Made by a program: the position numbers and the translations under genes. Below, in pieces: positions 1,409 through 57,139 of a DNA stretch of 61,373 bases. The DNA is from Girardia tigrina. Taxonomy: Eukaryota. The first letter of the stretch is position 1; every line of letters starts with the position of its first letter. The stretch is from positions 1 through 61,373 of the forward strand of contig MQRK01193516.1 in NCBI GenBank assembly GCA_001938485.1, in the 5' to 3' direction. The notes below the pieces were generated by a model. It ran no database searches and was not told the origin of the DNA. It saw only the letters and a program-made list of their open reading frames with translations.

Positions 1409-4400
1409 CTAGAATTTTAATATTTATATTTTATTTACTAGAATATTGGTCATTGGAAATTCGTACATTAAATAATCATTTAAAGAATTTATTGAGCGTT
1501 GTAATAAAAGAATCATAGGAATTTTATTTTATTAAATTTTCAAATAAAATAATATAATTTGAGTACTGTTAATTTAAAACGGAGGTATAAAAGATAAAGG
1601 TTAATGTGAATGTTTTTGAACAGAATCCCAGAAATAGATACTTTTCAAGTTCAAAGTTCTGAACCTTAACTTTATTCGAAAGATTTGAAAAATTATGATC
1701 ATTTTTTTATAAAAATTATGATTTCCATTATTTTTTTCAATTCGGAGATCCATGTGGGTTCAAACACATACTAAAAGGAGTTTTCCGAGTAACATCTTTA
1801 CTAACCTCTTAGATCTACGCCCTAGTTATGTTATATATAATTTATGGGGCATTATAACAAATAGAATTTTTCAAGTTGTTTATTTAAAAAATAGAATCGA
1901 ATTTTGAAACTAAAGAGTTAATATAGCCATATGATTCTAGCAAAATTATATTTTTAGCAATCTTCTGTTTTTCAATTGCTTTATACATGGTGATATAACT
2001 TACTTCGACATTAGTCTCGCACCGAACATGGTTAATAGTTTCCTTTGGGAAAACCTTTGATCTACTTCGTTCAATTCCGATTGAATTACGCCACTTGAAA
2101 GCTTGCCATTGGCTTCATAGTTACATGCGTGGATCATATTGTATCTTGTAACAACACAAGAAATAATGATTTTCTTAAACCAAGAATTTAAATTAAAACT
2201 GCATCCACCAGTTTAGCATCCCAGGCTTATACATTTTTTATTTCGATGTATGACTTTGAAACTTATGCCCTTTAACGCCGATGATTTAGAAAACATGTTA
2301 ACCAACTCCTGGATAGAACTGAACATTTTCCGTATTGGAAACTGCACTTCTAGTTGTTTTGCCCTTACATTCGTTATATTTTAAAAATTCTTTATTTTAA
2401 ATAAAAAAAATTTCAAATTATATTTTTTAATTAAAATTACTTTCGTTTCTATTTTTTATAAAAAACAATAAAAAAATTCTATTTTTAAAATTTTTCCATA
2501 ATTTATAAATTCAAGGAATTAAACAACATTTATAAATATAAATATTTACAGTTAATAAATCGGGTTAGGGTTTTATATTACACTGGAACTCCTTTTTAAA
2601 TATTTAGGGCAACAACATGGTCTTATAAACTTTATTAAAATTACAAGCCTAATTGTGTTTTGAGACAATCCTCAACCATACTTTCGTATATAGACATTCT
2701 TCTCGAATAGTAAAATAATAGTGCAATCTAAAATAAATAATATAAAAATATTTAAATTTAATAATCTGAAATTCTGTCCGAATTATTGGAATATACAAAA
2801 CAATTAAAATATGAATCTGTCATCTGGACGGGAAAGAAACCATTCCAAATATTAAGAACATTTAGACAATTCTCATTTGAATTTTTATTACTATCACAAT
2901 TAGAGTCATTACAACTCTCAGAAAGTCTTTCATCGTTTGACGTCGCTCTAATTGGTTTCGTTATTTCTATTTTTAATCATGATTATTCGAACAGTTCTTC
3001 TAAAACTTTTTAAAATATTTAATTTTTAAAAATATTAATTTAAATTATTTCTAAATAAAAACAAAAAATTATAAAAAATGTTATCAAGTTATTAAAAATG
3101 ACTTTAATTTAAATCTTTTTAAATTTAATTAAATGCTTTTCTTTTCTTAAAAAATATTAAACTTAATTTAAATTGTTAATTTAAAAATATAAACTTATCA
3201 AATTATTATTTTAATTATGTTCGAATAGGCAATCATTGTAAATATAAAAATATTATTAATAAGAAAAAATTTTTTTATAAAAACAACCACGTTTTTCAAG
3301 CAATACCAATGCACTAAAAAGAGGAAAATAATTTTTTTTCTAGACATGTGCGAAATTTTATACCTAACCAAAAACTGTGGGGTGGATTTCTGAATTACTG
3401 CTATTAGTAACTGCTATTTCCTCTTTACTGCTTTTTAGTAACAATCGATCATTTCTATGCCCCGCGTTTTTGGTTAGGTATAAAATTTCTCACATGTCTA
3501 GAAAAAAAATTATTTTCCTCTTTTTAGTGCATTGGTAATGCTTGAAAAACGTGGTTGTTTTCATAATTTTTTTTATTAATAATATTATTTAACTATTTTT
3601 AGTTATCATTTAGGAATTCAAATCTTTCGATTGATTTCGAATAACAGAAATGATAATAAAACCAAAATGACAAAGTTTTATTTTAATAAAAGCAAGTTTT
3701 ATTTCAAAATAATTTTTAAACCTAATGTTAATACTTCTACACTTAATTATCACTTGATTTTCACAATATTTGTTCAATTTATTAATTTTTTCCGTACATC
3801 CGTAAAGTAAATGTTTTAGAATATTGTATTGTCATCGGAAGCAAGCCTGTATAAAAAAATTCAGCTCAATTGGATGACTGAAAGTGGTCGAAAAATCAAT
3901 CGCAAGATTTGTTCCAGACAGACAGACAGAAAAGAAACCAAGCTAAGAAAAACGTGGTAAAAAATACCAATTTCCATCTGGGTGGAGAATCACCATTCTA
4001 AATTCAACATACTCAAATCAACATACAGCATCCATACATTTACACATTCAAACAATTTAAAATATTCCTCAAACCAAACAACACACACAATACAATATGC
4101 AACACGCATCATCCGAAAAAATCTTTGGTCACTATTTATATTCAATTATAAGTGTAACAATTGTCGGTGAGAAATTTTGGTAAAGCAGTCATTTCATTAA
4201 ATGAGTTTAAAAAGTCTTATTCAATGTGACCTCATTGGCAATCAACAATACGCTCACAATATGGCCGGAAATGGGTTTAGATTATCTGGATGAAGTTTTT
4301 GGTGATAAAGGACTTTAGAGCTTCGAACCTAGTGCCTGATTCATTTTATATCTTTGGCTCCACAAACACCAAGACTCTATGGTCATGTGAGTTCAAATAT

Positions 4401-7400
4401 ACTGAAGTATTTCAAATAATATTTCCTTCATCCAGTTCACATTATTTTGACCTGAAAGGCCGTATTTTTGGTCGTTCCATGGGTTATTTTATCACTATAG
4501 CAGAATGCAGTAACATGCTTTAGACTCAACTTTAGAAAGATATTTGATCAAACAAGGAAGCATTATTGGCTGTCTTTTACAATTAACCCAAACTTATATT
4601 ACGAAGGCAAAGTTTACTCTGTAACTTGAATTTCGTGTGGTATTTGACATTGTCCTGATGTTGAAAACATGATCGACAGCAAAAACCTTCTAATGAGTAA
4701 AGAACTCGATACATGAGTAACTTTAACCAGCTCAGTAACTTCTTGTATCGTTTTAATGTAATCTGTTTCTGATATTCAGCAATCAAACGGTGTTTAATGC
4801 ATCACCTAGATTTTTCCCAGAGGTCATTCTTCATAATGTCGCATACCGGTAACTCACTAACCCTGATATTCTTAGTCATTCGCCTACTCTATATAATTCC
4901 GATCGACTTGATAATGGATGTGGTGCTTGTGGACAGCTGTTTCCCCAATTCAAAAACTTTGCTTGTGACTCTCAGTCTTCTTAAATTTGCTAATGACTTT
5001 GATGATAATGTGATAGTCTTTCGTCAGTCTGTTTACTATATAGAACTTGAAAGATATTTTTCTGACAGTTTTTAAAAATAAAACAATCGAGTTTGATGAA
5101 ATACCGTAAAAGACATCAGTAAAATAATACATAAACAATGACAAATATTAAGTACAATTTAAGTCTCACCAAGCATAATGAATGCCTCAGCACATTTTTG
5201 GGTTTGTTTATGAGACGTTCTTTTTCTTTCTAGACTCCATAATCGAGACTTTTGATAGGATTTGTATATGTCTGTCGGCCACAACATTTCCCACGGAAGA
5301 AATATTTTAAACTGATCTTCAAAAAATACTTTTAGGACGACAATCCAAAATTTAAGTTCATAATCATCCCCAAGTAAAATTGCGGTCAGATAACACCTAA
5401 TTGCTAGGTCCATGGAAGTAGACCCTGATGCCTGTTGGAATGGATCCAAGAAATTACTGACCAAAATTCAAATAAGTTATCAGAAAATATACAATAAAAA
5501 TGCTTACTGATCATAAAGTCTCTTAAAAATACTCATTAATTTAGAGTCTTTCACTATGTCTTCTTCTGTGTTCCAAAGGTCAGGTAAGGCAGAGAATTTG
5601 CTTCTCCAGGGCTGATGTTGTAAATAGTGTTTAACAACAAAGATTATTTTGGGAGGAAGGAGAGAAAGGCACATGACCGGTTCTAGTAGCAAATGTTACA
5701 ATATTTAACTGCAAAAGTATTATATTAAGTAAAACTTATTTCTATTAGTTTCTTAAGAGTTGTAATGCTCGCTTTATAAATCATATTTTATAAAACATAT
5801 TTTTTGCTCATCGATTGATCGTATTGAATAGTCGGGTTTTTGATAATTTTTATATTCAATGTTTTTCAAACAATCGACAATTCCCAAAAAGAATTATTGG
5901 AAAAAATTCTTTATAATTAAAAAAAATTTAGATAAATTTCAATTTCGTTCTTTAAAGAATCGACAAAGAAATTGCTTAAAATTCAAATCTGCAATTAAAA
6001 AATTATTATCGTCAATTTCTCTGTTTTTCTGACAATTCTATCAATGTTTGATGTGATTCATACAAATTGCAAACCGGAAAACCGCTATCCATTCCAAATT
6101 CTATCCGATAATTCGCTAGATAAAGTGCATATCAATCCCAATCAAATCGAGAATATTAACTTTGATTTATCAATTAATATTTTTAATGCGTGTTTAAAAA
6201 TGAATATTTTAGGAATTTCATCATTGGTGTCAGAAGTTGGATTTGAGGATCATGTTAATTTAATTAATTTTTAATTAATACAATTAATTTTCATGTAAAA
6301 CCACAAAAAAAGTTGAATTCAATATACTATTAATCATTTCCTCTGGAAGAAATTTAAATTTTAGCAAAACTATGGTCAATGTGGATCAGTTTATAAATAA
6401 ATAATTTTAAAATCCATAAATTATAATTTTTATAATTCATTGAGATATTTTATTAGAATAAACATTAAGTTCTTTCCGATTTCAAAAATAAAATTTAAAC
6501 ATAATTTTACAACAAATAGAAAACAATCAAGATTCAAAGTGAAGACCATTTGAATCAATGACTTAAATCCATCTATTATCAATTTGGGCCTTATCGCTGC
6601 GGTACTATTTTTTGTTTAAGAGGCAAAATATTCCCGAGATACGTTTTCGAACTCACCCAGATTGTTGAAGTTGCGGCCACGAAGAAAGTGGACCATAGAA
6701 TGGAAAAGGTGGTAGTCGGATGGCATCAGATACGGACTATAAGTTGTGTGAGGAAGAAGTTCAATGACATCAAGACTCTTGTCTTTTCTTGGATTTCTCT
6801 GTCAGTATGTGGTTTAGCGTGGTCTTACAGCAGAAGAGCGTGCTTTTGATTTATCAAGGTGGAGTATTTTCTGCCAAGCACTCAAAACAGCTTCCTTGAT
6901 GTTTTCTTTTGTTGCTGGTTCTATCATTTATATTTTATTTTGATTTTGTTTGCCTGGATTATTAAAATATTTCCACTTTTACTCACAAGTAACATTTCTA
7001 CGGATTAAACGAACAGAACGCGGATTCAGTAGCAATTTTCTAGAGATCACCATACGTCATTGGGCTTTAATTTCAGTTAATTCATAAGGTACCTCTCGGC
7101 AGAGACTACTGACTTTTCCAACATCGTGAAGATTCCGCACAACTGATGTTTGAAGAACAATCTAGGAGTGATCGTAAAGAAATTATTTTCGATGGCTACC
7201 TGGATTGCTTCAGAATTCACTGTTAAAAGTCAGCCTAAACGCGACTTGTCTCTGAGGTCAGTGTCGTCGCCGTTATACTTTTTAAACCAATTTCGTGCAA
7301 TATGATCCGAGACCATATTCTCACCTTCAACTTCATATTTCTTTTTTGTTGCTGTCGCAGCCCTGAAGCCTTGTTTCAAATAATTTTGTAAAAGGACACG

Positions 7401-16400: not shown

Positions 16401-19400
16401 CATTGTCTTGAAATTCCAAAAGAGAGCACTTCCGTCATAATCACCAATGATAACCACGTTATTCCTATAGGCCATGGCTGATATTTTATTAACTGGAGTC
16501 TGTGTTGATGATTTCATGAAAAATAAACGTTTTAACAAATATGCGAACCTCAATAGGAACCTGGCGACCCTTTATGATAACACTACCTTCGACAATAATG
16601 TGTTGCATATAATTTCCGGAGTCTATACATAACATTTTCTCCTTCGTATAACTAACATATCGTTGCGTAAAAAATTAAATCAACAATAAAAACCTCTCAT
16701 CGCTTAAATTTCTTAATTGATTTTTATTTGCTCCAGTCGACCATTCCTGAAATATTTGTCAAATAAAAACATTGAAAATAAAATGCCAACCGCTATACTT
16801 ATATATCTGGTGGCAGGAGCTATTTCTCTGATTTTGATAAGAAGTCGACAATCCCAGATTTCGGTGGGACCTTCTTTGAGCAATATTAGGAAATACTGTT
16901 TTAAATTGCTAACTCGAATCATTTCAATAGAATTTTCAGGAATGTCATTTCTCAAATCAATTACTTTACCAATATCTAGGCGAACTGCGGATAAACTGTT
17001 TTTGACGCGGACAGACGCTGATCCTCCAGAACTACTGCCGTAAACGATAATGACTCCTCGCGAAGTTGGTGAAGTGGCCGCTTGAATCCATTCTATACCT
17101 CGAATGCTACAATGAATTACTTGAAACTCCCGTTCCAATTGACTTGTTAAAACATTCCACAACTAATATTTCATAATATACCATTGATAGATTATATACA
17201 TTAAAATACTTGCAAAAGACCTTTGGAATTCCCAACTGCAATTAGTGGATAATCAGAGTTGTTCATATTCACAGGATTTGCACGGATTGCTGTTGGATCA
17301 TTGAGTAATCCTTGGAAAAGAGAAACCATATTCATAGTTAACTTGCCCCATTTTTCTATTCGTCCTCTATATTGTAATAACTTAATTACCAAAGGGAAAA
17401 AGTCACACTAAAAATTTATGAGAAACTTTATCGAACAAAATCAAGTTGCCAATGTGATGGAAGATCGAGGGGTTTATATTTATAAGAATAAGAAATACGG
17501 TGATTTAAAAAGGCAAAATGCAAATTTTACAATTTTTACGCATATTTTTTAACAATGTTTTACGCTAAATGGAAAATACAAAACTATAAAAAACATATAT
17601 TGATAAAAAATTATAATATTTTTTATTCATTTTTCATTTCTTGTCTTCTTTTTGTATCAAAATATTTCCAATTCGTTTTATTACGAATGATTTGAGGTCT
17701 TCCTTTTTTGCATCTTCGGTTAACGGTTCAATAACAGGATTCAATTTCTTATTCAAATACAATACGTACCAGACATGCTGACGCTTCACAAAAGTACAAT
17801 AAGAGCACCATACATCGTATACGGACGCTAATTTCGAGAATGTAAACACAAAAATACCTGAAATACAGATTTTTAAGTTCATTTATGCTTTTAGCAGTAA
17901 AAAGAGTCTAATAGTTTATTTTTCTATCGACAAATTTATTTTCACAAGCCGAAAAACTATAAATTTGATATTGATGGGCTGTTAACTTAACAAAAGTTAA
18001 CTTCAAAATTATCGTTCAAATTGTTAAATTAGAGTAAAAAATATAAAATTAGCGTACAAATTTGCATTTTTTATTGTATTTTCCATTTAGTTTAAAAAAT
18101 TGTGAAAAATGTGCCTAAAATTGTAAAATTAGCGTATGAATTGTAGTACGCCCGATTTAAAAATACAGTAATTATAGTCCAAAATGGTACATATTCGACA
18201 GTGTGATGGTAAGGCATTAATGGAAAGCAAGAGACCAGAATCACAGGGTTTACTATTCATCATCGTTTACAATCTAAATCTGATACAGAATTAAGATAGA
18301 TTCTGTCGAATAACATGGATTTCTTTAAATTTAAAGTTGCATTGTTAATATTGTGAACAAAACTGTTGATAAAGTCAAACACTGATTTCAAAGGCAATCA
18401 GAAAACAAAGAAAATCTATAATCAACATTGTGAAAATGTCATTTTTATTTAAAGTTCAAAATTATTTAAGCTTTACCTTTTAAACATAAGAGATCTACTC
18501 CAAAAGAATCTCTTTCGAAAGGACATATACAGAAGACACATAATATTTTGGGATATTTTCAAAATGAAACAGGTTCAAAATAGCGAAGTTAAAAACAATA
18601 ATCAAATTTTCATTTGTCACTTACTTTTCCAATCTGTCGACTTTATGATTATTGGTCACAATTCGATACGACCCGATTACTGACTGACATTTCTCAGCCT
18701 CATGGAAAACAGAAAAATCCACCATAGGTGTAGTAATATTGTATAACATCACCGGCCATATCGTATCAAGAGGCGACTCAGTTTCGGGCATCTTTACGAA
18801 ATTTTGAGGAGATAATAAGTAAGAATTCTTTGCCGGATAAACCTCTAACAATACTGGAGAAATTTGTAGTTCCCATGTCTGTGGCATAATAAATTTATGT
18901 TAACAAAGTCCTGAAATATTCAGTTATAAAATATTGCCTGAATCTTCGTATCTGACATGATCAGAGATATTAGAGTTTCACTGGAAACCCCAACTGACAT
19001 ACTGTGAATGCGAACATTTCTGGTGAGCCTTGGCAAATCCGATTGACAGAGTAACTGATAATGACCAGCCTCTACCCATCCGCTAATCGCATTGTCAATG
19101 CTACAAGAATTCGTATTCAATCTTATATTCGGAATTGGAGAATCTGTTGTTTCATTGTCATCAATTTTTATACTGTTTGTAATCTCTTCATCTTCAGTGA
19201 CAATAACTGGACGTCTACCTCTTACCGTCACTATTCCGTTTTCATGAAGACAATACAGAAGATCATTTTGCCAACAACTGTATACCTGAAAACAAACCCA
19301 ATTTATTTATATAACAAACGATGACGAATCATAACATTTTAGGGATTAATTTTTCACTAAATACATGTTACCAGTACCACAGATGTAACATAACAGAGCT

Positions 19401-33502: not shown

Positions 33503-36500
33503 CTCTTTCAAACAATAATCAAATAATAGAGACTAAAATTTAAAGTCCGATCCCTTTAGTTTTCAATTAATTAATTAACTTTTACTTATACTCCCAAGAA
33601 TTATCATAAAGTTGAGTTGCACAGTAAAATTGTGTTCCTTCTATCGGATTACTTGTATTTTATAATTAATTGATAAAATTGTCAGAACCCACTTCTCTTC
33701 AAGGTGATTCGGAACATTTTCATCTTATAACGGACTGTTCAAATAGAAATATTCGAAGGAATAAAACGTGGACAAAGTAATATGTTGATGAAAGACAGAG
33801 ATAATAATTGCAGACAAGCGTCAATGATTGAACGATAAGAGGGAATCTGCGACACGAAGAATCACATTACAGATCAATGTTATTCATCCGGATAGATCGA
33901 TTGATCAATACGTGCGCACTTGTAACAAGTGGCTGTGATTCAATCACTGGCGATTTCGGGATGTCTTTTTATAAGACTTGATCCGATATTATATCCATGC
34001 AGTTTAGTGATAATGCAGAAATAAGAATGTAATAACAGTCGTTGGAATTAACAAAAACACTAAAAACTATTTAAATGTAGATGTGCTATCTTGAAATTTC
34101 CATTTGTATTCCATTTTGCAAACATTTAATCTATAGAAGGAAATATATGATAAACAATATGCATGAATTTAATACTTAATAGAAGAATATAGAAACAGAA
34201 CATTGATATTTGTAAAAAGATCAGAAATAAGGTGCAAAATAATTGTAAAATAAAGATCTCTTCTAGTGCTGCTTCAAACCTTCATTAAGATGGAAGATGT
34301 GGGCCTTCCATCTCTTTCAATGGTATTGAACCGTAGGCTCTTTAGAGGGTCCATCCCAACTAAAAAGCAATAGCAGCCCCCCGATAGACCTCCTACGAGG
34401 TTGTCAGCTTTCCGCTTAAGATATCTCTTCGGACCCCCAGTAAAAAACGACCAACCATGTTCGGATATTCCATGATTTAGCATTCCTTTGGCCGTACCCA
34501 TGGACTTTGAACAGCCAGCGAAGGGACAGTTAAAATTTCCTTTTTCAGATAAATCAGTTAAACGGAAATTTAACACTTCTAAGGAGATCGTTTCCGAGAG
34601 ATTCGTTGAAACATTCGTATCGATGGTCCGTACCTGAATACAGCTTGTAATTGATGGATTGTCTTCCTTCTTCCTGATATCGCCGATCAATTTTAACCCA
34701 CCACACAAGTCGTCATCACAACAGTCACCTGCTTTTCTTCTTTGATGCTTCTGTTGGATTTGATTGGATTGATTTGCTTTTTCTGTATGATCTGTCTTGA
34801 AGTGTCTGGTCAGCCACCCTATTGATACATAGCTCCTGGAGTAGTACTGATATGGATAAAGTTTCTGCTTGTCCGGAGCCATTTCATGATCCATTTTGAT
34901 AAGTCTATTGAGCTCCTTTTGTTCTGCAAAGGTCTTCTTGCAAAGCTCGTAGTGACATTTGACCATTTGCCTTCTCGGTTTGATCAGTTTCGGCAGATCT
35001 TCGGTCTTCCTCCCTACGATACTCCTTTTGCGGCTTTGTAAGATGGTACAAACTTCGATCAGATTAAACAAGATTAAAAGAAATTCTTCTCCAATTCAAT
35101 ACATCAAACCTAGGTGTACCTTAAATACGAGAAGTGAGACACTTTTCCTAGCATTGCATTTGTTTGAGAATCAGAAAATGGGATATTATATCGCAGACTC
35201 TTGAAACTGAATGAGATGAAAACTAATATTAGACAGAAACAATCTCATTATCAACAATGCAACCTTCAAACCCAACATTCGATTGTTCAATTGTGATCCG
35301 GTAACAGATGATCATCAGTCCTACCAACGAAAATCATTCTCCAAATTTGTGTCAGAACATTGATATGATCATTTAATCACTTAAGTATGGATCATCATTC
35401 CAATATTATTATTCCAAAGATGTATGACGCGTTCAAAAGGTTCCAGTTTGGTTTCATGATGTGTCAAGTGTGTCGCCAGTAGATTTATTCTTTAATTCAT
35501 GATACTAATCGTAATCCACTTATTGGAGTACATCACCAACCTCACAAGATTATTTTCAAGAATACTGGAAAAAATCATCAATATTGTGTGTTAGGGAATA
35601 AATTTGAAGCTAAAATTTTTGATGTAGTAAATTAATTTAAATGAATAATAATAATGTAAAATTCTTTAAGAAAATTTTATCATAATAATTAAGTTAAATA
35701 ATTAAATTATTTTTATGTATTGGGTTGACCAAAAAGTCATTGCGTTTTTGAGTAAAAAAAAAAGCTTGAAAATATAAAACGGTGTGATAAAATTTAAATT
35801 CTAATATATATTTGAAACCTTAATTTTCAGACTATGTTTATACAAAATATTAATTGATTTTGTTTTAATTTATTACTTTACCGTCAATTCGAAATGGAAA
35901 ATCAAAATGAGCATATTCATCATGTTTTGTTGCATTATTTTCGCAAAATGAAAACCGCTGTGCAAGCTCATAAGAAGATATGTTTTGTATATGGTAGTGA
36001 CTCCTTAAAACTTNGACAGTGTCAATACTGGTTTTCTAAATTTCGTTCTGAAAAATTTCATCTGAAAGATGCACCACGCTCCGGTCTACCAGTTGAAGTT
36101 GACGGCGACAAAATAACAGCACTGATCAAATCTAATCCACATATGACGACAAGAGAAGTTACAGAGACTCTGGAAATATCGAAATCAAGTGTTGGAAGTC
36201 ATTTAAAGAAACTTGGATTCGTCAGNNNNNNNNNNNNNNNNNNNNNNNNNNNNNNNNNNNNNNNNNNNNNNNNNNNNNNNNNNNNNNNNNNNNNNNNNNN
36301 NNNNNNNNNNNNNNNNNNNNNNNNNNNNNNNNNNNNNNNNNNNNNNNNNNNNNNNNNNNNNNNNNNNNNNNNNNNNNNNNNNNNNNNNNNNNNNNNNNNN
36401 NNNNNNNNNNNNNNNNNNNNNNNNNNNNNNNNNNNNNNNNNNNNNNNNNNNNNNNNNNNNNNNNNNNNNNNNNNNNNNNNNNNNNNNNNNNNNNNNNNNN

Positions 36501-39500
36501 NNNGTCTGGTGGGATTTTAAAGGAATTGTGTTTTTTGAACTCCTTCTGAGGAATGAAACCATCAATTCAGACAGATATTGTGGTCAGCTGGAGAAATTGG
36601 CTCATTCAATTCAACAGGAACGGCCTGAATTGGCAAATCGAAAAGGAGTTGTAATTCAGCATGATAACGCAAGACCGCATACAAGTTTGACCACTCGCCA
36701 GAAACTCTTATCACTGGGTTGGGAGGTTTTGCCGCACCCACCGTATTCTCCNNNNNNNNNNNNNNNNNNNNNNNNNNNNNNNNNNNNNNNNNNNNNNNNN
36801 NNNNNNNNNNNNNNNNNNNNNNNTGATGATGACATCAAATCGTTCCTAGACGGCTTTTTTGCCGACAAAGGCAAAGGTTTTTATGAATCAGGAATAATGA
36901 AGCTACCGGAAAGGTGGAAGAAAGTGATTGAAAATAATGGACAGTATATCGTGTAAATATATTTGTGCATCCATGTCATTTTTTGATAATCAATATTTTA
37001 TTAAAAAACGCAATGACTTTTTGGCCAACCCAATATATAAATATTTGTACTATATATGGTTGGTAATTTAAATAAATTGGTTCCTCCAAAAAATAACTGA
37101 ATCATATTAAAATAAAGAAATTGTTTTAATATTCAGAGGTTGGAAAAAAATTCAAAAAAGTGGAAAATTGTTTATTAAAATAAATTTTTACTAAAAAGTT
37201 ATTTCTTACTTTTTATTATGGAGTATTCGGCCGTTCCGAAAGAAGATAGCATTGTGTATACTGCCTCGAGAATTAAAAACACTCGAGTTTGTACTCTTGT
37301 CATTAAAATAATTTTAGCTCCCCTATTGCCAAGAACATTCTTGTGGCATTTTCTGATTTCGGAAAACCTCTGACTTTTAATAATACTTAGCTTTGGGATT
37401 TAATTAGCTTTTTCCAAGAATACTATGATATTGTGCGGGAGGTTACAAAACATTTCTCAATGCGCTTGCCTCCAATCCAATATCTTCATTCTCTTTGAGA
37501 AAACAAATACAAGTTATAAGAGTTATGGTTAACTTTCTCATCTAAATAATCTTCCTTATCAAAATTGTTGGAATAATGAAGCGTATGGTTTTGACAAATT
37601 CTCAATTTTATACAAGTTTATTCGCATTTAATTTATATTATTCAATTTCTTAAGCGTTATTTTTTTCGTAAACATATTAATGTTAACAAGGTATAAATAA
37701 TGTCTTCATCTAAATTTAAAATATAATAATATCATATTTATTATTATTATTAATATTATTTTAAATTAAAAATAACAAGCTATATTCCTGAAATCGTGAC
37801 AGTCAATCGCAAAGTCCAAAATCGGGTTCGAATAGTTTTTGGTCCAAACGCGATTACCACTGTCTGTGTTCCACATGACCAGGTCACCTCCACTGTACAG
37901 AATCAATATAAAATCAATTGATAATTCTCTATAATGTCGCGTCCAATGAAAATCTAGCAGAAATAAGTAAAGGCAGTATGAGGAAACAACATTGTACCCA
38001 TTATTTTTTTCCCCGAATAACAAAAATCTGAAAGAATCGTTGCGTAGGTCGCATCCCAAACGATAATTGTCCCTGAGACGTCCGCTGACGCCAATTTCAA
38101 CGAATACGGTTTCTTTAAATCGTGATAGAAATTCTCCGGAGCCCATTTCACCTGATTATTTGTTTATATTAAATAAATTTGTATTCATTCTTATAGCTCT
38201 TTGCCTTGTCTACACAATATTAACAACCAATATAGATATGAAGAGAGCGATACGCGTACATATTTGAAAAATGTAATAAAATGTATATATAAAATTTTTT
38301 AAGTATCATTAATAGAGGTGTACCGGTATCAGTTTGAAAGAACCGGCCAGTGCAAAAGCCAGAATCAGAATTTTGGCAAATCTTGCAGAAATCGAGCCCA
38401 TTTTGTAAAATTTGAACATTTTACAAAAAAGATAATTAAATTCCATACGGTATGCGGAGTGATAACATTGGTTATTAAGCGAAATTTTTGAATATAATGA
38501 CAGGAGAACAGAGCAACGATAAATTTATTAGACGAAATCGTACTTCTATGTTCCATTAGTCTTATGAGGAATATTTGGAATGTTGATGTTTTGTATGTTG
38601 TTTGAGTGTTGTATGTTGATTTGAATTTGTATCTCTCCTACTCAGATGGCTGATTAATATTTTAATTATTATTATCTGAACTAATTTATTAAATTTAGAT
38701 TTAATATTCCAATTTATTTTTAATTTTTTATGATTGTAAATTTTAAATGATTTTATTAATTTTATTTTTAAATTTGTAAATTATTAAATCAAATAGATAT
38801 TTTTAAATAATTAATAGTAATTTTATTTTAACCTATGACATTTGTAGTAAAGATCAGTGTTAATGTTCCTAACTGAACTAAAGACTCTTTCAGATGGAAC
38901 TCTTTCGGCTGATGTAAGGTAACCACGTATCATAGGCACTATTGAAGGTAGCCCTTGCTGGATAGATTTCCAACAGAAGAAATAGATTTCTAAAGAATTT
39001 GAAGAGACATTCTGTTAAATAAGTTGATAACAGTATCTACAATTGATGCTAATTTTTGGTTATCAAGTGGAGTGATTGGGATGATTTCATCCAAATTGAA
39101 CAGTAAACAGAGATGCACTGATTTGGGTTTACTGACTCCTTGTAACTATTGCCCTATTTTAATTGCAAGGCCTTGAAATGTATTTCACGAGACACAAATA
39201 AACTTACTTTATCATTAGCCAAACTATGCAAATAATCAATTTAACCCTTAAGAATACTGAAAATTATTTTTACAACATTTATTGTTACAAAAATGAGAGC
39301 TATCTTCGTTAGTGCTCTCGGAAGATCGTTCATAATTCTGCATTTACGTAAGCCAGCATCACAACTAATAAGTGTTACAGGCATATGATTGAAAAGAAAG
39401 AAAATAACATTGTAAGGAACATTTTTGAATGTTGTTTTAGGGTTGTGTTTCTCCCACCCAGATGGAAGATTGATATTTTAAATGTTTTTAAACGTCGGAT

Positions 39501-42936: not shown

Positions 42937-43335
42937 CGATTATAAAATTTAAAATTTGAAAAGTTGAATGTTTTTTTAGTTGATTCAAACAAAATTATTT
43001 ACTAATTATTTTTTTTGTCGTTAATTTAATTACGAGAAAGATTTTGATTTAATTTATAAAATAATATTTTTAACGATAATTTTTTTGGCATTATTAACTT
43101 GAAAAGCATTACATTGTTTATATTAATTTAGAAAAGTTTTAACTGCCAACGAATTTTTATCTTCTTATCGGTAAACTTTGTTCTTTTGTACTTCAACAAT
43201 GCCACGACGACTCGAAAATAATTATATAAGAAAAGAAGAATTTCTTATTGATAATCATTTTTTACGTGATAAGATATTTTATATTTTGTTTAGTTACCAT
43301 AAACTTTCTATTTTTTGTTTTATACATTCTACGAG
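42937..43335. promoter_or_regulatory. Probable bidirectional promoter between WDR11 and SPSB
   Basis: Divergent start codons about 400 bp apart with no recognisable transposon between them; inferred from geometry only. Confidence 0.5.
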
Positions 43336-44542
43336 ATGAATTTTATTTTTGATAGTTTTTGTAAAAGATTTTTCAGCCCATCTCAATTATCAAATGTGAC
43401 TGATAGGTCTAACTTAGAGAATTATGAAACTGAAAAACAGAAGTTAAAAAAAAGATATATGAAGTGGATTCGGGGAAAGTTTTTTTATCAGAGAATGTCT
43501 CTTCTATCAGACGTGGCAATACCAAATAAACCGGGTAGAGTTATGATTTCCCACTGGATTCCCTACCTTTTCGAGGAAGGTCAAATAGATGAATATATTC
43601 AGTCACTTAATTCATGGTCTCCGGAGAAAAAGTCTATTAACATACAAATTATGGAAGCCGATCCGTTCACATTCCATCGAAGTCCTGTTGCAAATAGTAC
43701 TGATGCAATACGAGGTAAAGTAGGTGTTTCTACTGGAATTCATATTTGGAAGATACATTGGCCTCAAACAATGAGAGGTACTCATGCAGTGGTTGGAGTG
43801 GCTTCCGATGATTCATTGTTACAATATGACAGCTACATTTCTCTTGTTGGGTATGATAAGGAGTCTTGGGGTTGGGACATTTCCAATTTAATTAAAGTCC
43901 ATGATAATCAGTCGAATTTTTTTGGTTTTCAGAAGTATCCAAACTTTAAAAAATTATGTGACAAATTACCTGTTGAAAAGTCTCATAAAATACCAGATGT
44001 TATTTATATAATTCTTGATATGTATCAGGGCACTTTGTCTTATATGGTAGCTAATAAATTTCTTGGTATAGCTCATTCAGGTTTACGGGGAAAAACCTTG
44101 TATCCGGCCGTTAGTGCCGTGTGGGGCCATTGTGAAGTCACGATGAATTATTTTAATTTTCTAAATGGTGATTTTTATTTATATTTCAAAATTTTATGTG
44201 ATTAATTTTATTTTTATGTGATAAACTTTTGGAATTATGAAAATAACAAATTATTTTAAATAAAATAATTAATTTTATATTAAGATGGTTATTTGCTTCA
44301 ATAAACATAATTCTTATTTTTTATTAGAGCCTCCTAGTCTGAAGAGCCTAAGTTTATACCAATTTAAGAAATTACTCAGATTTCACTGTCTGTTTAATAA
44401 AATATCAAGTTTAAAGTTAGACAGCTTTTTTGAGAAGCTTGTTTCCTCAATCAATTATCAAGATGCTGTTTCCAAACTCGATATTCCAACAGTCCTAAAA
44501 GATTTACTGATGACAAATAAATCTGTAATTGTGAAATTCTGA
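43336..44542 (+). CDS. SPSB1: SPRY domain-containing SOCS box protein (SPSB1/SPSB4/gustavus-like); exons 43336-44167 and 44328-44542
   Basis: SPSB SPRY motifs FHRSPVANSTDAIRGKVG, RGTHAVVGVA, ESWGWD and LYPAVSAVWGHCEV. A phase-1 intron (GTGATT...TTAG) precedes the SOCS box EPPSLKSLS...LDIPTVLKDLL. The start codon is uncertain. Confidence 0.9.
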
Positions 44543-52793: not shown

Positions 52794-55469
52794 TTATCCT
52801 CCTTTCAAAAAACTCATCACTGTTATCATTGAGTTATCGGTTATTCCAGATTCTTGAATTGTTTTATCATCTTCCAAATCACTTCCATTGAATGATAACT
52901 GAAGAGTGCCTTTTATTTCTGCTTTATTTTTAATAAGAAGTTTCAGTTTATCTACTGTAAAATTAACCGGAATCGTAATCTGGTAATTTCTCTCGAGACA
53001 ATAACAAAATAGGTTTACCATCTTCGACATTGAAACACTCAAAGAATCTTTTCCATACATTCCTATTTCCTCTTCATCCACCATCTCTTTTCCTGATATC
53101 TCCAAATGAACTTTTTTCGATCCAATTTTAAATTTCTGTGACAATTTGCGCTTCACTTTTTCAACTTTTGCATTTGGAAAATATTCTAATGAATATTCTT
53201 TTTCTTCATACTTAACGTTGATCTTCATCTTTTCTATCATAATTATTTCGGACTTTCCTAATTTGTATTTGTATAAATGCTCTTCAGTTTGAAGATGTAT
53301 CTTATCCGACCAAAGCTGGAAAGACTTTTTATCCATTTTCGCACTTTTTGACAATTCGGTTATCAAATTCGATACTTTCTCGTCTGAAAATAACTCAAAA
53401 TTATAATTTTGGTCATGACATTTTATGTTTATTTTGACTTTCTCTCTCATTTTGATAATCGCATTGTTTCGTATTTTATACTTATATATCTTCTCATTCC
53501 CATTATCAATACATTCTTCATTTAAGCTCAAAATAATATGACTCTCTTCAATTCCAAATTTCCTCCTCAATTGACCATTTATATCTTCAAGTGTCATATC
53601 CGAATATACTTCAATATTCTCTCTTTCCTCACAAAAATCTATTAAGAGTTTTATGTTTGTTTTCATTGCCAGTTTTGACTTATCTTTAATCTTGTATTCA
53701 TTTATCATTTTATCATCATTAAGAATTTGATCGTTGAAATGAAGGATGATTTCGTTTATATTGTTCTTAAATGTTTCCCGTATTTCTTTTTTTAAATCCG
53801 ATATTGTCTCATCCGAAAATATTCCTATACGATATTCTTCTTCACAAAATTCAATGATTACTGTTATCTTTACTCTCATCTTCAATTCCAATTTGTTTTC
53901 TTCAGTTTCAATTTGTCCCAATAGAGTCTCATTCTTAACCTCTTCTTCATTCATATATAACTGAAAAGATCCAATTCCAATTCCGATTTTCATCGACAAT
54001 TGAGTCTTTATATTTTCAATTGTTTTCTCGGATGATTCTTCTATTTCATGAGATTCTCCACAATAATTCACATTTATTCTCATTATTATCGACATAAACA
54101 ACTCAGAATTGTTCTCTATTTCGTATTTTGTAAATCCTTTCTCGTCCAATAAATAAATTGAGTCTTTTCTCAATTGGATATATTTACTTTCGATTTGAAT
54201 TATTTCTGAGAGTTTCCTTCTTACATCCTCCACAGTTGCATTTGATGACTCTACGATATTGTAACTTTTGCGACACGATTTTATTGTTATATTAATTTTG
54301 GGGTCGATGATTATTTCTGAGTTGTTTTTTATTTTATATATATACAATTTCTCATGGTCCTTTAAATCTTTTCCTTGAAATATTAATCCATAATCATTCA
54401 ATTTCTCCATTCCTTTTACTTCCGATATTCGTTCTCTCACACTCGAGATGGTCGCATCAGATGATGTTGCAAAAGGAAAAGTTGTATCAAAATATTTTAC
54501 CGACAGTTTTATCGTCCCTATCATTATCAATCTTGACTTATCTTTAATCTCGTAATATTTTATCATTTTATTATCATTCATAATTTGATCATTGTAATGA
54601 AGGATGATTTCGTTTATATCGTTCTTAAATATTTCACGTAGTTTCTTTTTTAAATCCGATATTGTCTCATCCGAAAATATTCCTATACGATATTCTTCTT
54701 CGCAAAATTCAATGATTACTGTTATCTTTTCTCTCATATTCAATTCCAATTTGTTTTGATCTGTTTTGATTTTTCCCAATAGAGTCTCATTCTTAACCTC
54801 TTCTTCATTCATATATAACTGAATGGATTTATTTCCAATTCCGATTTTCATCGACAATCGAGTCTTTATATCTTCAATTGTTTTCTCGGAGGATGTTTCT
54901 ATTTCGTGAGATCCTCCATAATAATATACAATTATTCTTAATGTATCGATTATTACTTCTGAATTGTTTTTAACTTTACTTGTGTAAAATGTTTCATGAT
55001 TATGTAAATATTCTCCTTCATATATTAATCTATAATCATTCAATCTCTCCATTCCGGTCACTTCCGATATTCGTTCTCTCAGACTCGAGATGGTCGCGTC
55101 AGAGGATGTTACAAATGGAATAGTTGTATCAAAATATTTTATAATAACTGTTATCGTCTCTGTCATTATCAACAATGAATCCTCTTTTATTGGATATTTG
55201 TAGATCTGATCATCGTCCTGCAGAATTATTTCCTCGGATCTTAAACAGATGCGGTTTTCTTCAATGCCAAAGATGTGCGATAATTGAGTCTTAACGTCAA
55301 AAACTGTCGCATTAGATGAAACTTTAATTTGACTTTTTTGATCATGAAAAATTAGTGTTTTTACAGTGAAACTTCGACGAAAAACACAATAGTAAAATAC
55401 GACGAAAGTGATGAAATATATAATCCACGAAAATAAGAATGAAAAACTGACTTCCATTGATATAAACAT
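52794..55469 (-). CDS. Membrane-anchored poly-ubiquitin-like protein: N-terminal TM helix, 12 tandem UBL domains, C-terminal LKGG
   Basis: Intact intronless 891-aa ORF. Residues ~8-30 are hydrophobic and followed by RR. Repeats of ~71 aa show a ubiquitin-fold pattern (T[IV]xxLKxxI...LxxxGxxLxD..T/L..Y.I...S.[LI]). The last unit (aa 817-891) aligns to ubiquitin by eye and ends VMSFLKGG-stop. Confidence 0.85.
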   Translation of the reverse strand: MFISMEVSFSFLFSWIIYFITFVVFYYCVFRRSFTVKTLIFHDQKSQIKVSSNATVFDVKTQLSHIFGIEENRICLRSEEIILQDDDQIYKYPIKEDSLLIMTETITVIIKYFDTTIPFVTSSDATISSLRERISEVTGMERLNDYRLIYEGEYLHNHETFYTSKVKNNSEVIIDTLRIIVYYYGGSHEIETSSEKTIEDIKTRLSMKIGIGNKSIQLYMNEEEVKNETLLGKIKTDQNKLELNMREKITVIIEFCEEEYRIGIFSDETISDLKKKLREIFKNDINEIILHYNDQIMNDNKMIKYYEIKDKSRLIMIGTIKLSVKYFDTTFPFATSSDATISSVRERISEVKGMEKLNDYGLIFQGKDLKDHEKLYIYKIKNNSEIIIDPKINITIKSCRKSYNIVESSNATVEDVRRKLSEIIQIESKYIQLRKDSIYLLDEKGFTKYEIENNSELFMSIIMRINVNYCGESHEIEESSEKTIENIKTQLSMKIGIGIGSFQLYMNEEEVKNETLLGQIETEENKLELKMRVKITVIIEFCEEEYRIGIFSDETISDLKKEIRETFKNNINEIILHFNDQILNDDKMINEYKIKDKSKLAMKTNIKLLIDFCEERENIEVYSDMTLEDINGQLRRKFGIEESHIILSLNEECIDNGNEKIYKYKIRNNAIIKMREKVKINIKCHDQNYNFELFSDEKVSNLITELSKSAKMDKKSFQLWSDKIHLQTEEHLYKYKLGKSEIIMIEKMKINVKYEEKEYSLEYFPNAKVEKVKRKLSQKFKIGSKKVHLEISGKEMVDEEEIGMYGKDSLSVSMSKMVNLFCYCLERNYQITIPVNFTVDKLKLLIKNKAEIKGTLQLSFNGSDLEDDKTIQESGITDNSMITVMSFLKGG

Positions 55470-57139
55470 TCGATTAAGCTATTAGTATTTCCTATACAAT
55501 CTGGGAATATAAAAGAGGATCTTAAGAGCCAATAAAAATGACTTTATTTATGGAAATGTTTGGTTTATTCAACCTAAATTTTCAATTTTAGTAAGAATAA
55601 ATTAGTTAGAAAGACTGGTAAAGCAAGTACTCTACTTTAGTGTTTCTACGACCTTTTTCATGACTTTGATGTAAAGAATATTTTTTGGGAAATATATGTC
55701 CATTTTAAGACATAAAAGGAAGAGTTTCTGACCATGAGTAATAGGGAGAGTTTCCTCTAGTTATATCAGAAATATTTAAATACAAAATATTTTATGATTT
55801 TGCTATTCAAAATAAACTAAAAACCTTTTATGTAAAAAGACTTCTATTCAATTTCCAACAAAAAGAGAATACAACTGTAACTTGAGACTCATTTTATTAA
55901 AAAAACAAAATAAATGTGTGATAAAGAATGCAGCGGATATAAAAATATCAGATTGATCAAATTAGTCTTTCTGCTTTCCTGGAAAAAATCTTTCATATTA
56001 AATGAAGAGTTATAAAAATTATTTAATAACTAACAACTATCTTTAATTTGTAAATGTTGAAATTTTAAAAATGAATTTGAAAACAACATTTGTAATTTCG
56101 AAAAAAATTTAAAGCAATCTTGGAAAAAGACGAATAACTATTTCGCCAAACACAATTTCAAAACGCGAACACTTAACTGAGCTCTGATATGTTCCGTTTA
56201 TCAAAAACTCTTTTTGAAATCATCATATCCTACGCTATATTTTCTTTTTTACCCTTCACAGATGTAATAAACATTTGCTTGATGTTGATAAGAAGAAGTA
56301 AATTCTTGTTTGATGTAAAACTTTCTTTGCTAGTCTTACTTAAAAATTTTTCTTCAAATACTCGGTCTCAGTCCGATAATATAGATTTATGCTTCCAAAA
56401 CTTGTAAAGACAGTGACTTTTATAGCTTCTACGAAGTTCAGTTCATCTCATTTAGCCGATGACCCACCATTTTTCTGAAACGATCTATCATTACGGGTAA
56501 GTATTTGTATTTGGATTTGAATTCTTAGAAGTAAGCTACATCAGTTATTATTTGTTCCAGCAGTTCAAAATCTTCTTATGAAATCAATAAATTTTTTTAA
56601 CGCTTCAAATATGTTTTCTTTTTCGCTCAGAATTCACATCTCTGAAATCAGAGTTCGATAGTTTATTTATGTTTGCCCATTAATAGCTTTCTTGATTATC
56701 TTTCATCAACTTTTTATTTATCTGATGAAACAGCTTCTCGTGCTTTTATTGTGTTAACTTCTGTACATAATGTCTGGAACTAAAATCTGTATCGTCTTTT
56801 CTTTCTTCCTCATGACCATAACATCTATCAGTTCGTATTGATCAAAATTCTTAAAATATTATCTTTTCTTCACTTAAACATTTATATTCTATGAGGAACC
56901 TTGAAGTAATTGACGTTTCGATTTCAAAATTTAAAATGACAGTTATTTATTTGTGGTGTCTACATTATGAAAATTTCCTCCTTCTACGGTATTTATAAAC
57001 TTCACTTTTGATTTATTTATCATCGCTTCGTTATAACGTGCCCAAAATTTTGTACATAACTTTTTATCAATTTTTAAAAGTCCATCGGACTTATTATGTT
57101 CTTTTTCTTTCCAATATGCCAAAATGAAATTGAAACTAG

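Follow-up and report, generated by a model that had tools for sequence, protein, structure and literature searches.

A predicted membrane-anchored protein of twelve ubiquitin-like domains with one terminal Gly-Gly in Girardia tigrina: a candidate multi-domain modifier

Modifiers that join several ubiquitin-like (UBL) domains and have an E1 of their own, ISG15 and FAT10, are regarded as vertebrate inventions. UBL domains also occur at membranes: TMUB1 and HERPUD1 are membrane proteins with one UBL and no free terminal Gly-Gly (GG), and UBL3/MUB is lipid-anchored at its C-terminus. To our knowledge, no modifier described in eukaryotes is a transmembrane protein in its own right. ISG15, which works with UBA7, UBE2L6 and HERC5, is a soluble protein of two tandem, non-cleavable UBLs with one terminal GG, in the sequence LRLRGG, and is reported only in vertebrates (PMC9722776). 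FAT10 (UBD), served by UBA6 and UBE2Z, is likewise soluble and consists of two linked UBLs. Its tail, CYCIGG, is more hydrophobic than that of ubiquitin and needs no processing (PMC13065764). Polyubiquitin precursors (UBB/UBC) carry ubiquitin folds head to tail in one intronless ORF. In bacteria, BubA is a multi-beta-grasp modifier with varied N-terminal domains that is conjugated via its last domain and acts in anti-phage defence (PMC11601596).

The gene described here lies in a stretch of 61,373 nucleotides of the Girardia tigrina genome (contig MQRK01193516.1), hereafter the window. An earlier note on this DNA had pointed to an intact intronless ORF of 891 aa. A check of the reading frame bears this out, "intronless" being meant for the coding region only; in-frame stops precede the ATG, and the 190 nt upstream hold no other ATG. 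The terminus VMSFLKGG followed by a stop, TAA, is read directly in the sequence, and the predicted mass is 105 kDa. The features are as follows.

52794–55469, minus strand: complete ORF of 891 aa (anchor, 12 ubiquitin-like domains, terminal Gly-Gly, TAA), from ORF calling, Pfam and AlphaFold2.
55519–55557, minus strand: AT-rich upstream motif, a putative core promoter, weakly common to the paralogue L002 at the same distance from the ATG (about 50–90 nt upstream in both genes).
55380–55451, minus strand: predicted transmembrane helix V7–F30 of signal-anchor type with acidic E6 ahead, from hydropathy and AlphaFold2; kept in L002.
55374–55379, minus strand: basic pair R31-R32, C-terminal to the helix (positive-inside); KKK in L002.
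55158–55373, minus strand: UBL unit 1, class A, aa 33–104, from unit division and the unit tree.
54516–55157, minus strand: UBL units 2–4, classes B, D and E, aa 105–318, the extra internally duplicated block that turns a 9-unit layout into 12, from unit identities and the tree.
53022–54515, minus strand: UBL units 5–11, classes B, C, D, E, F, G and H, aa 319–816, from unit division and the tree.
52797–53021, minus strand: terminal UBL unit 12, class Z, aa 817–891, tail SFLKGG, with Phe at ubiquitin position 72.
52797–52802, minus strand: terminal Gly-Gly codons, with the stop immediately after, from the sequence.

The ORF was said to lie amid decayed transposons. Remnants of mariner, Tc1 and LTR elements are indeed present, but the surroundings are not transposons only, since the window also carries host genes: exons of WDR11 at 16713–17162 (minus) and 37766–38170 (minus), and an SPRY-domain (SPSB-like) gene at 43315–44205 (plus), a copy of which on contig C229712 is 89% identical. 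A 265-aa ORF at 34274–35071 (minus) has weak C2H2 zinc-finger matches and is probably retroelement-derived.

The window protein resembles ISG15 in its tandem non-cleavable UBLs with one terminal GG, in the pro-tail borne by some of its relatives, and in the dedicated UBA1-type E1 that it would imply. It differs in having 12 domains (2–12 across the family) instead of two, the end SFLKGG, an anchor, and an invertebrate host, with no detectable orthology. Membership in the ISG15 family was considered and rejected, as two domains, LRLRGG and a vertebrate host are all absent. With FAT10 it shares linked UBLs and a hydrophobic tail of non-ubiquitin type (SFLKGG here, SCLTGG and NCLTGG in relatives), yet FAT10 has two domains and is soluble; assignment to that family fails on domain number and tail, which would have to be two and CYCIGG. 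The bacterial Bub/Bil Ubls are alike in their multi-beta-grasp build and varied N-terminal domains, and conjugation via the last domain is proposed for the window family by analogy; they are unlike in having 1–3 domains and bacterial enzymes, and no sequence relationship is shown. TMUB1, HERPUD1 and UBL3/MUB likewise hold a UBL fold at a membrane, but a single one that lacks a free GG. The protein would therefore appear, from its sequence, to be a new form of multi-domain UBL modifier outside the ISG15, FAT10 and polyubiquitin families. Our preferred reading, to which we give a probability of roughly 0.6, is a family of ISG15/FAT10-like modifiers that evolved independently; its anchored members would tie targets to a membrane, with defence as a possible role. 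A single-GG modifier of this kind, tethered to a membrane, had been suggested in the earlier note, and the architecture together with the selected GG and the selected anchor speaks for it.

Twelve ubiquitin-fold repeats had been recognized in the sequence. The Pfam ubiquitin model matches the protein in 10 stretches (E=4e-62), a unit HMM finds 12 units of 70–75 aa, and AlphaFold2, given a 12-sequence family alignment, predicts 12 beta-grasp domains and a helix at residues 7–29 with a mean pLDDT of 79.8; single-sequence AlphaFold of the last four domains gives a pLDDT of 33. Taken singly, the domains can be overlaid on ubiquitin, NEDD8 and ISG15 with Z about 14 and an rmsd of about 1 Å. The beta-grasp fold of a type I UBL modifier is thus found by Pfam, AlphaFold2 and structure alignment. 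At most junctions of the model there is no linker, the last strand continuing directly into the first strand of the next domain, while the overall shape is not fixed by the model (pTM 0.39).

Pairwise identity between units is 13–39%, except for U2/U5 (69%), U3/U7 (75%) and U4/U8 (80%), and GG occurs only at aa 185–186, inside unit 3, and at 890–891. The absence of a GG cleavage site from the 11 internal junctions is thereby upheld, as is the view that the protein is not a processed polyubiquitin precursor. Such a precursor needs near-identical 76-aa units with LRGG at each junction; here the units are dissimilar and fall into position-specific classes, the spacing is about 71 aa, and the junctions are devoid of GG, although head-to-tail ubiquitin folds in one intronless ORF are common to both.

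The same data bear on the suggestion that the protein is a preformed polyubiquitin-chain mimic recruiting ubiquitin-binding proteins to a membrane. The best Foldseek matches of the whole model are linear tetra-ubiquitin, though at TM 0.1–0.14 and rmsd 14–18 Å. Against this, the Leu8/Ile44/Val70 patch is not kept: across the 62 internal units, Phe or Tyr prevails at position 8, where Leu is not among the common residues, Ile44 is found in 4, and Arg, Thr or Lys predominates at position 70. The linkerless 71-aa spacing compares with 76 in linear chains, the LRLRGG spacer of such chains is missing, and units are 14–29% identical to ubiquitin. The mimic, which the earlier note had entertained, is hence dropped as highly improbable.

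The protein is one of a family. A search of the AT-rich genome (1.43 Gb in 255,254 contigs) for paralogues returned 62 matches, and the loci read comprise about 14 intact intronless ORFs of 2, 3, 4, 6, 9, 10 or 12 UBLs each and about ten broken copies; canonical polyubiquitin genes with 228-bp spacing are present separately. In a tree of all units, position-specific classes emerge with a common layout of nine, A-B-C-D-E-F-G-H-Z. The window gene reads anchor-A-B-D-E-B-C-D-E-F-G-H-Z, that is, the 9-unit form with an internal duplication, as the high identities of the three exceptional unit pairs indicate. Whole-gene dN/dS is 0.3–0.55 in all family pairs tried, including those with dS >1, and each unit has therefore stayed distinct, in contrast to the units of polyubiquitin. 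A dN/dS near 0.5 denotes moderate constraint, which counts against the preferred reading. Judged from the paralogue comparisons, purifying selection acts on the coding sequence, the anchor and the single terminal GG, and the ORF at 52794–55469 is a real gene under selection. So far the family appears private to one genome.

Several further loci were encountered in these searches. A second, more ubiquitin-like multi-UBL family (L039:882–1784, minus; L040:2919–4594, minus) is partly N-masked, ends FRQVGG-S and has no GG at the junctions seen. A fragment of about 300–450 bp from the unit E region of a 9-UBL gene exists in at least 15 near-identical dispersed copies (L041, L042, L043, L029) with common adjoining sequence, as if captured by a mobile element. 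One family copy (L007/L009, contig C197494) is disrupted by a mariner transposon insertion, and an ORF with a TRAF-type zinc finger (L032:6794–7372, minus) is separated by about 2 kb from a 4-UBL copy with a frameshift.

The hydrophobic segment V7–F30, described at the outset as one N-terminal segment followed by RR, reaches a Kyte-Doolittle 19-mer maximum of 2.18. Hydropathy, the AlphaFold2 helix and a paralogue agree on a single hydrophobic helix, about 20 aa long and with basic residues C-terminal to it, the form of a signal anchor. Its conservation among relatives, which the earlier note wished to see checked, is found in one paralogue, L002 (contig C239816), a 674-aa protein of nine UBLs ending STLKGG-TGA. 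L002 starts M-x-x-x-M-[E/D] as the window gene does, and continues with a hydrophobic run (maximum 2.72) and KKK. It is not a mere allele, as the flanks are unalignable (about 5 kb upstream, 3 kb downstream) and the unit number differs. Between the two genes dS is about 1.2 in the anchor, 0.55 in unit 1 and 0.07 over units 6–12, from which we infer old paralogues partly homogenised by gene conversion. Leaders of anchor type occur at 0.07% of positions in the window, and simulated neutral survival of the leader per lineage is 0.03–1.3% at distances of 0.55–1.2 and up to 7% at 0.3. Since the leader has been kept in frame in both genes despite a dS of about 1.2, the anchor, by this comparison, is under selection.

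Alternatively, the ORF could be decayed polyubiquitin or unexpressed, with a leader that is chance T-rich sequence or the end of an intron. A T-rich leader followed by GAAG does occur in both paralogues, and broken relatives are many. However, the codon phase of the GAAG site differs between the two genes and unit 1 lacks a Met; a shared splice acceptor is hence unlikely and was discarded as the origin of the leader. The low neutral survival of the leader, the persistence of nine position-specific unit classes across paralogues with dS above 1, and the separate existence of canonical polyubiquitin genes also speak against decay or silence, which we hold to be scarcely credible.

An acidic residue precedes the helix and RR or KKK follows it in both anchored paralogues. 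By the positive-inside rule the basic side of a membrane helix is cytosolic, and on hydropathy and charge only, a topology with the N-terminus out and the UBLs in the cytosol is favoured, as had been supposed. A cleaved signal, or lumenal or extracellular UBLs, would instead make a secreted or surface protein, cytokine-like as is free ISG15. The N-terminal position of the segment would suit this, as would 11 N-glycosylation sequons, a number expected by chance in so Asn-rich a protein; yet a basic n-region is absent, the charge order runs the other way in both paralogues, and all other members keep the same GG without any leader. We regard secretion or surface display as very unlikely, and continue with the preferred reading of an anchored cytosolic modifier.

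Conservation of the terminal GG among paralogues, another point raised earlier, is complete: 12/12 terminal domains carry both Gly75 and Gly76, either free or exposable by processing, in an alignment with a mean identity of 33% and six invariant columns in all (GG and four others). Gly makes up 3.4% of residues in internal units. The dN/dS of the terminal domain is 0.25. In L010, a member of 10 domains, the G-H-Z block is triplicated; the two internal Z copies have lost the GG tail and the last has kept FLRGG. The other GG losses among the copies read are in broken ones only (L032, L027, L028, L038), and some broken copies retain GG. Members either end at GG or bear short tails (LCCGD, FNCGF, EED, MF, SKL, NEH), and pro-ISG15 likewise has a short tail after GG (PMC9722776). 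In the window gene and L002, the stop right after GG is retained although the stop codon differs and the 3′ flanks cannot be aligned. On these comparisons the terminal GG is under selection, and its pattern of retention is that expected of a modifier attached whole via one end.

Post-GG tails in L013:1447–2379 (minus), L037:2563–3066 (plus), L004, L005 and L030 are hydrophobic (ATFWIFFFNKFIWFQRK; NLEFYLYLLRIFDII) or Cys-rich (LCCGD, FNCGF, INSCCF), and could be C-terminal membrane or lipid anchors lost on processing.

A conserved GG could also serve a decoy or scaffold that is never conjugated, its tail binding a protease, an E1 or a pathogen deubiquitinase without ligation and its anchor localising the decoy. 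OASL- and USP7-type tandem UBLs function without being ligated as modifiers. Both OASL and USP7 are among the fold matches of the 12-UBL model, and residues 72–74 before the GG vary widely in the family, a degree of variation uncommon among proteins that share a single E1. At position 72 the terminal domain has Phe in the window gene, where its relatives show T, C, G, I, L, H, E or F. The stop held directly behind GG, the pro-peptide-like tails of other members and the expansion of E1s and E2s in the genome weigh against such a decoy, and we consider it unlikely.

The enzymes were surveyed by profile search of the genome, in which counts are profile matches and not locus numbers, the assembly being redundant (identical-score doublets and triplets); the single-copy controls for this redundancy, PF14732 and PF08825, had no match in the genome. 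The four-helix-bundle (4HB) domain, of which each UBA1/6/7-type E1 has one, gave 20 matches spread over 20 contigs, with 14 distinct score classes among them, the UFD gave 29 and the SCCH domain 55. For a full-length E1 model, 5 contigs have long open frames that match 600–700 of its positions, and many further contigs match part of it. Examples of UBA1/6/7-type E1s are C233121:3858–6065, C254152:8203–10095, C158880/C254378/C75456, C229156 and C239705, several of which are open frames of 650–875 codons. The E2 domain (UQ_con) has at least 150 matches, drawn from 414 candidates, most of them whole-domain in one frame without introns and several in tandem clusters; contigs with such matches include C249919, C244919, C238594 and C175276. 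Humans have about 35–40 E2s. Their UBA1/6/7-type E1s number three (PMC12355090).

We infer that the extra E1 and E2 enzymes serve the multi-UBL family. Arg72 is the specificity filter of UBA1 (PMC12355090), and canonical UBA1 is an unlikely activator of the window protein because its terminal domain is without Arg72. A dedicated E1 is implied, much as the CYCIGG-type tail of FAT10 goes with an E1 other than UBA1 (PMC13065764). Removal of the N-terminal domain of ISG15 does not slow its transfer, the E1 reading only the last domain (PMC12355090), and extra upstream domains therefore need not hinder activation.

Taken together, the preferred modifier reading would work as follows. The N-terminal helix, a signal anchor, would insert in an ER-derived or the mitochondrial outer membrane, and the 12 linkerless domains would extend into the cytosol. 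A dedicated E1, one of the extra UBA1/6/7-type enzymes and not canonical UBA1, would adenylate Gly891, and a paralogous E2/E3 pair would pass it to a lysine of the target. The other 11 domains, not being cleavable, would form a bulky spacer, by estimate tens of nm long if extended, and the target would end covalently tethered to the membrane or sterically blocked by a 105-kDa tag. Soluble relatives would provide the same tag with 2–10 domains and no anchor. In its fullest form, this amounts to a private ubiquitin-like conjugation system built independently, with modifiers of 2–12 domains, several extra E1s and over 100 intronless E2s, in which the window protein is a transmembrane modifier ligated via Gly891 as a covalent tether to a target, e.g. 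a pathogen protein; that whole is tentative, and we would put it at rather below even odds. Host defence is the likeliest purpose, a guess by analogy with ISG15 and bacterial Bub (PMC11601596) to which we give something just short of an even chance; it is suggested by genes that turn over rapidly, by intronless genes in tandem and by enzymes expanded alongside.

The anchor is carried by only 2 of about 14 intact members, the others being soluble and without a leader, and the soluble ones could be the true modifiers while the two anchored copies have a regulatory role, taking up E1/E2 or a deconjugase as sinks at the membrane, and are seldom transferred. A tethered 105-kDa protein would presumably be an awkward E1 substrate. 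Even so, its terminal domain is under purifying selection with LKGG intact, and on so long a spacer the tail would have soluble enzymes within reach; this division of labour seems to us quite improbable.

What is new here is a genome-private multi-UBL family with a selected terminal GG and a selected anchor, alongside expanded E1/E2 matches. If the preferred reading holds, a family of 2–12 domains with an invariant GG beside expanded E1s and E2s in an invertebrate would be evidence that cascades of this type have come about repeatedly, and would supply natural variants on the role of extra UBL domains and the splitting of specificity among E1s. With a modifier anchored in a membrane, a protein could be relocated or trapped in a new manner, by covalent tethering instead of tagging. 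The host being a planarian, RNAi makes the modifier reading directly testable.

Literature searches returned no account of the multi-UBL family, and no outside homologue of the full 891-aa protein was found in libraries that may lack relevant animal proteomes. Profile searches outside the genome gave generic ubiquitin proteins only (P0159 is an ordinary polyubiquitin-like protein), and metagenome and viral contigs gave no family homologue. A HMMER scan of 1.84 billion representatives found only multi-UBL proteins at 21–35% identity, from a diatom, an anaerobic fungus and metagenomes, and none of 150 HMMER hits combines an anchor, many UBLs and a terminal GG. A few proteins, P0038, P0112 and P0130, have a terminal GG after 4–8 divergent UBLs; P0130 and P0038 are metagenome proteins with 7–8 UBLs and terminal LRGG/LRGGM. 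P0059 and its neighbour, from the bacterial assembly GCA_030147755.1, have a hydrophobic N-terminal segment and 5 UBLs, ending LRGE or IAGD. These database proteins (P0130, P0038, P0059 and the neighbour) are 21–30% identical to the family, and their units group apart from most family units in the tree. Each half of the architecture has thus arisen elsewhere, convergently. In the bacterial assembly, two tandem genes (L076:742–2118 and 3496–4872) encode this hydrophobic N-terminus and the five eukaryote-like ubiquitin domains; their context gives a chlamydia-like impression, and they are possibly host-directed ubiquitin mimics.
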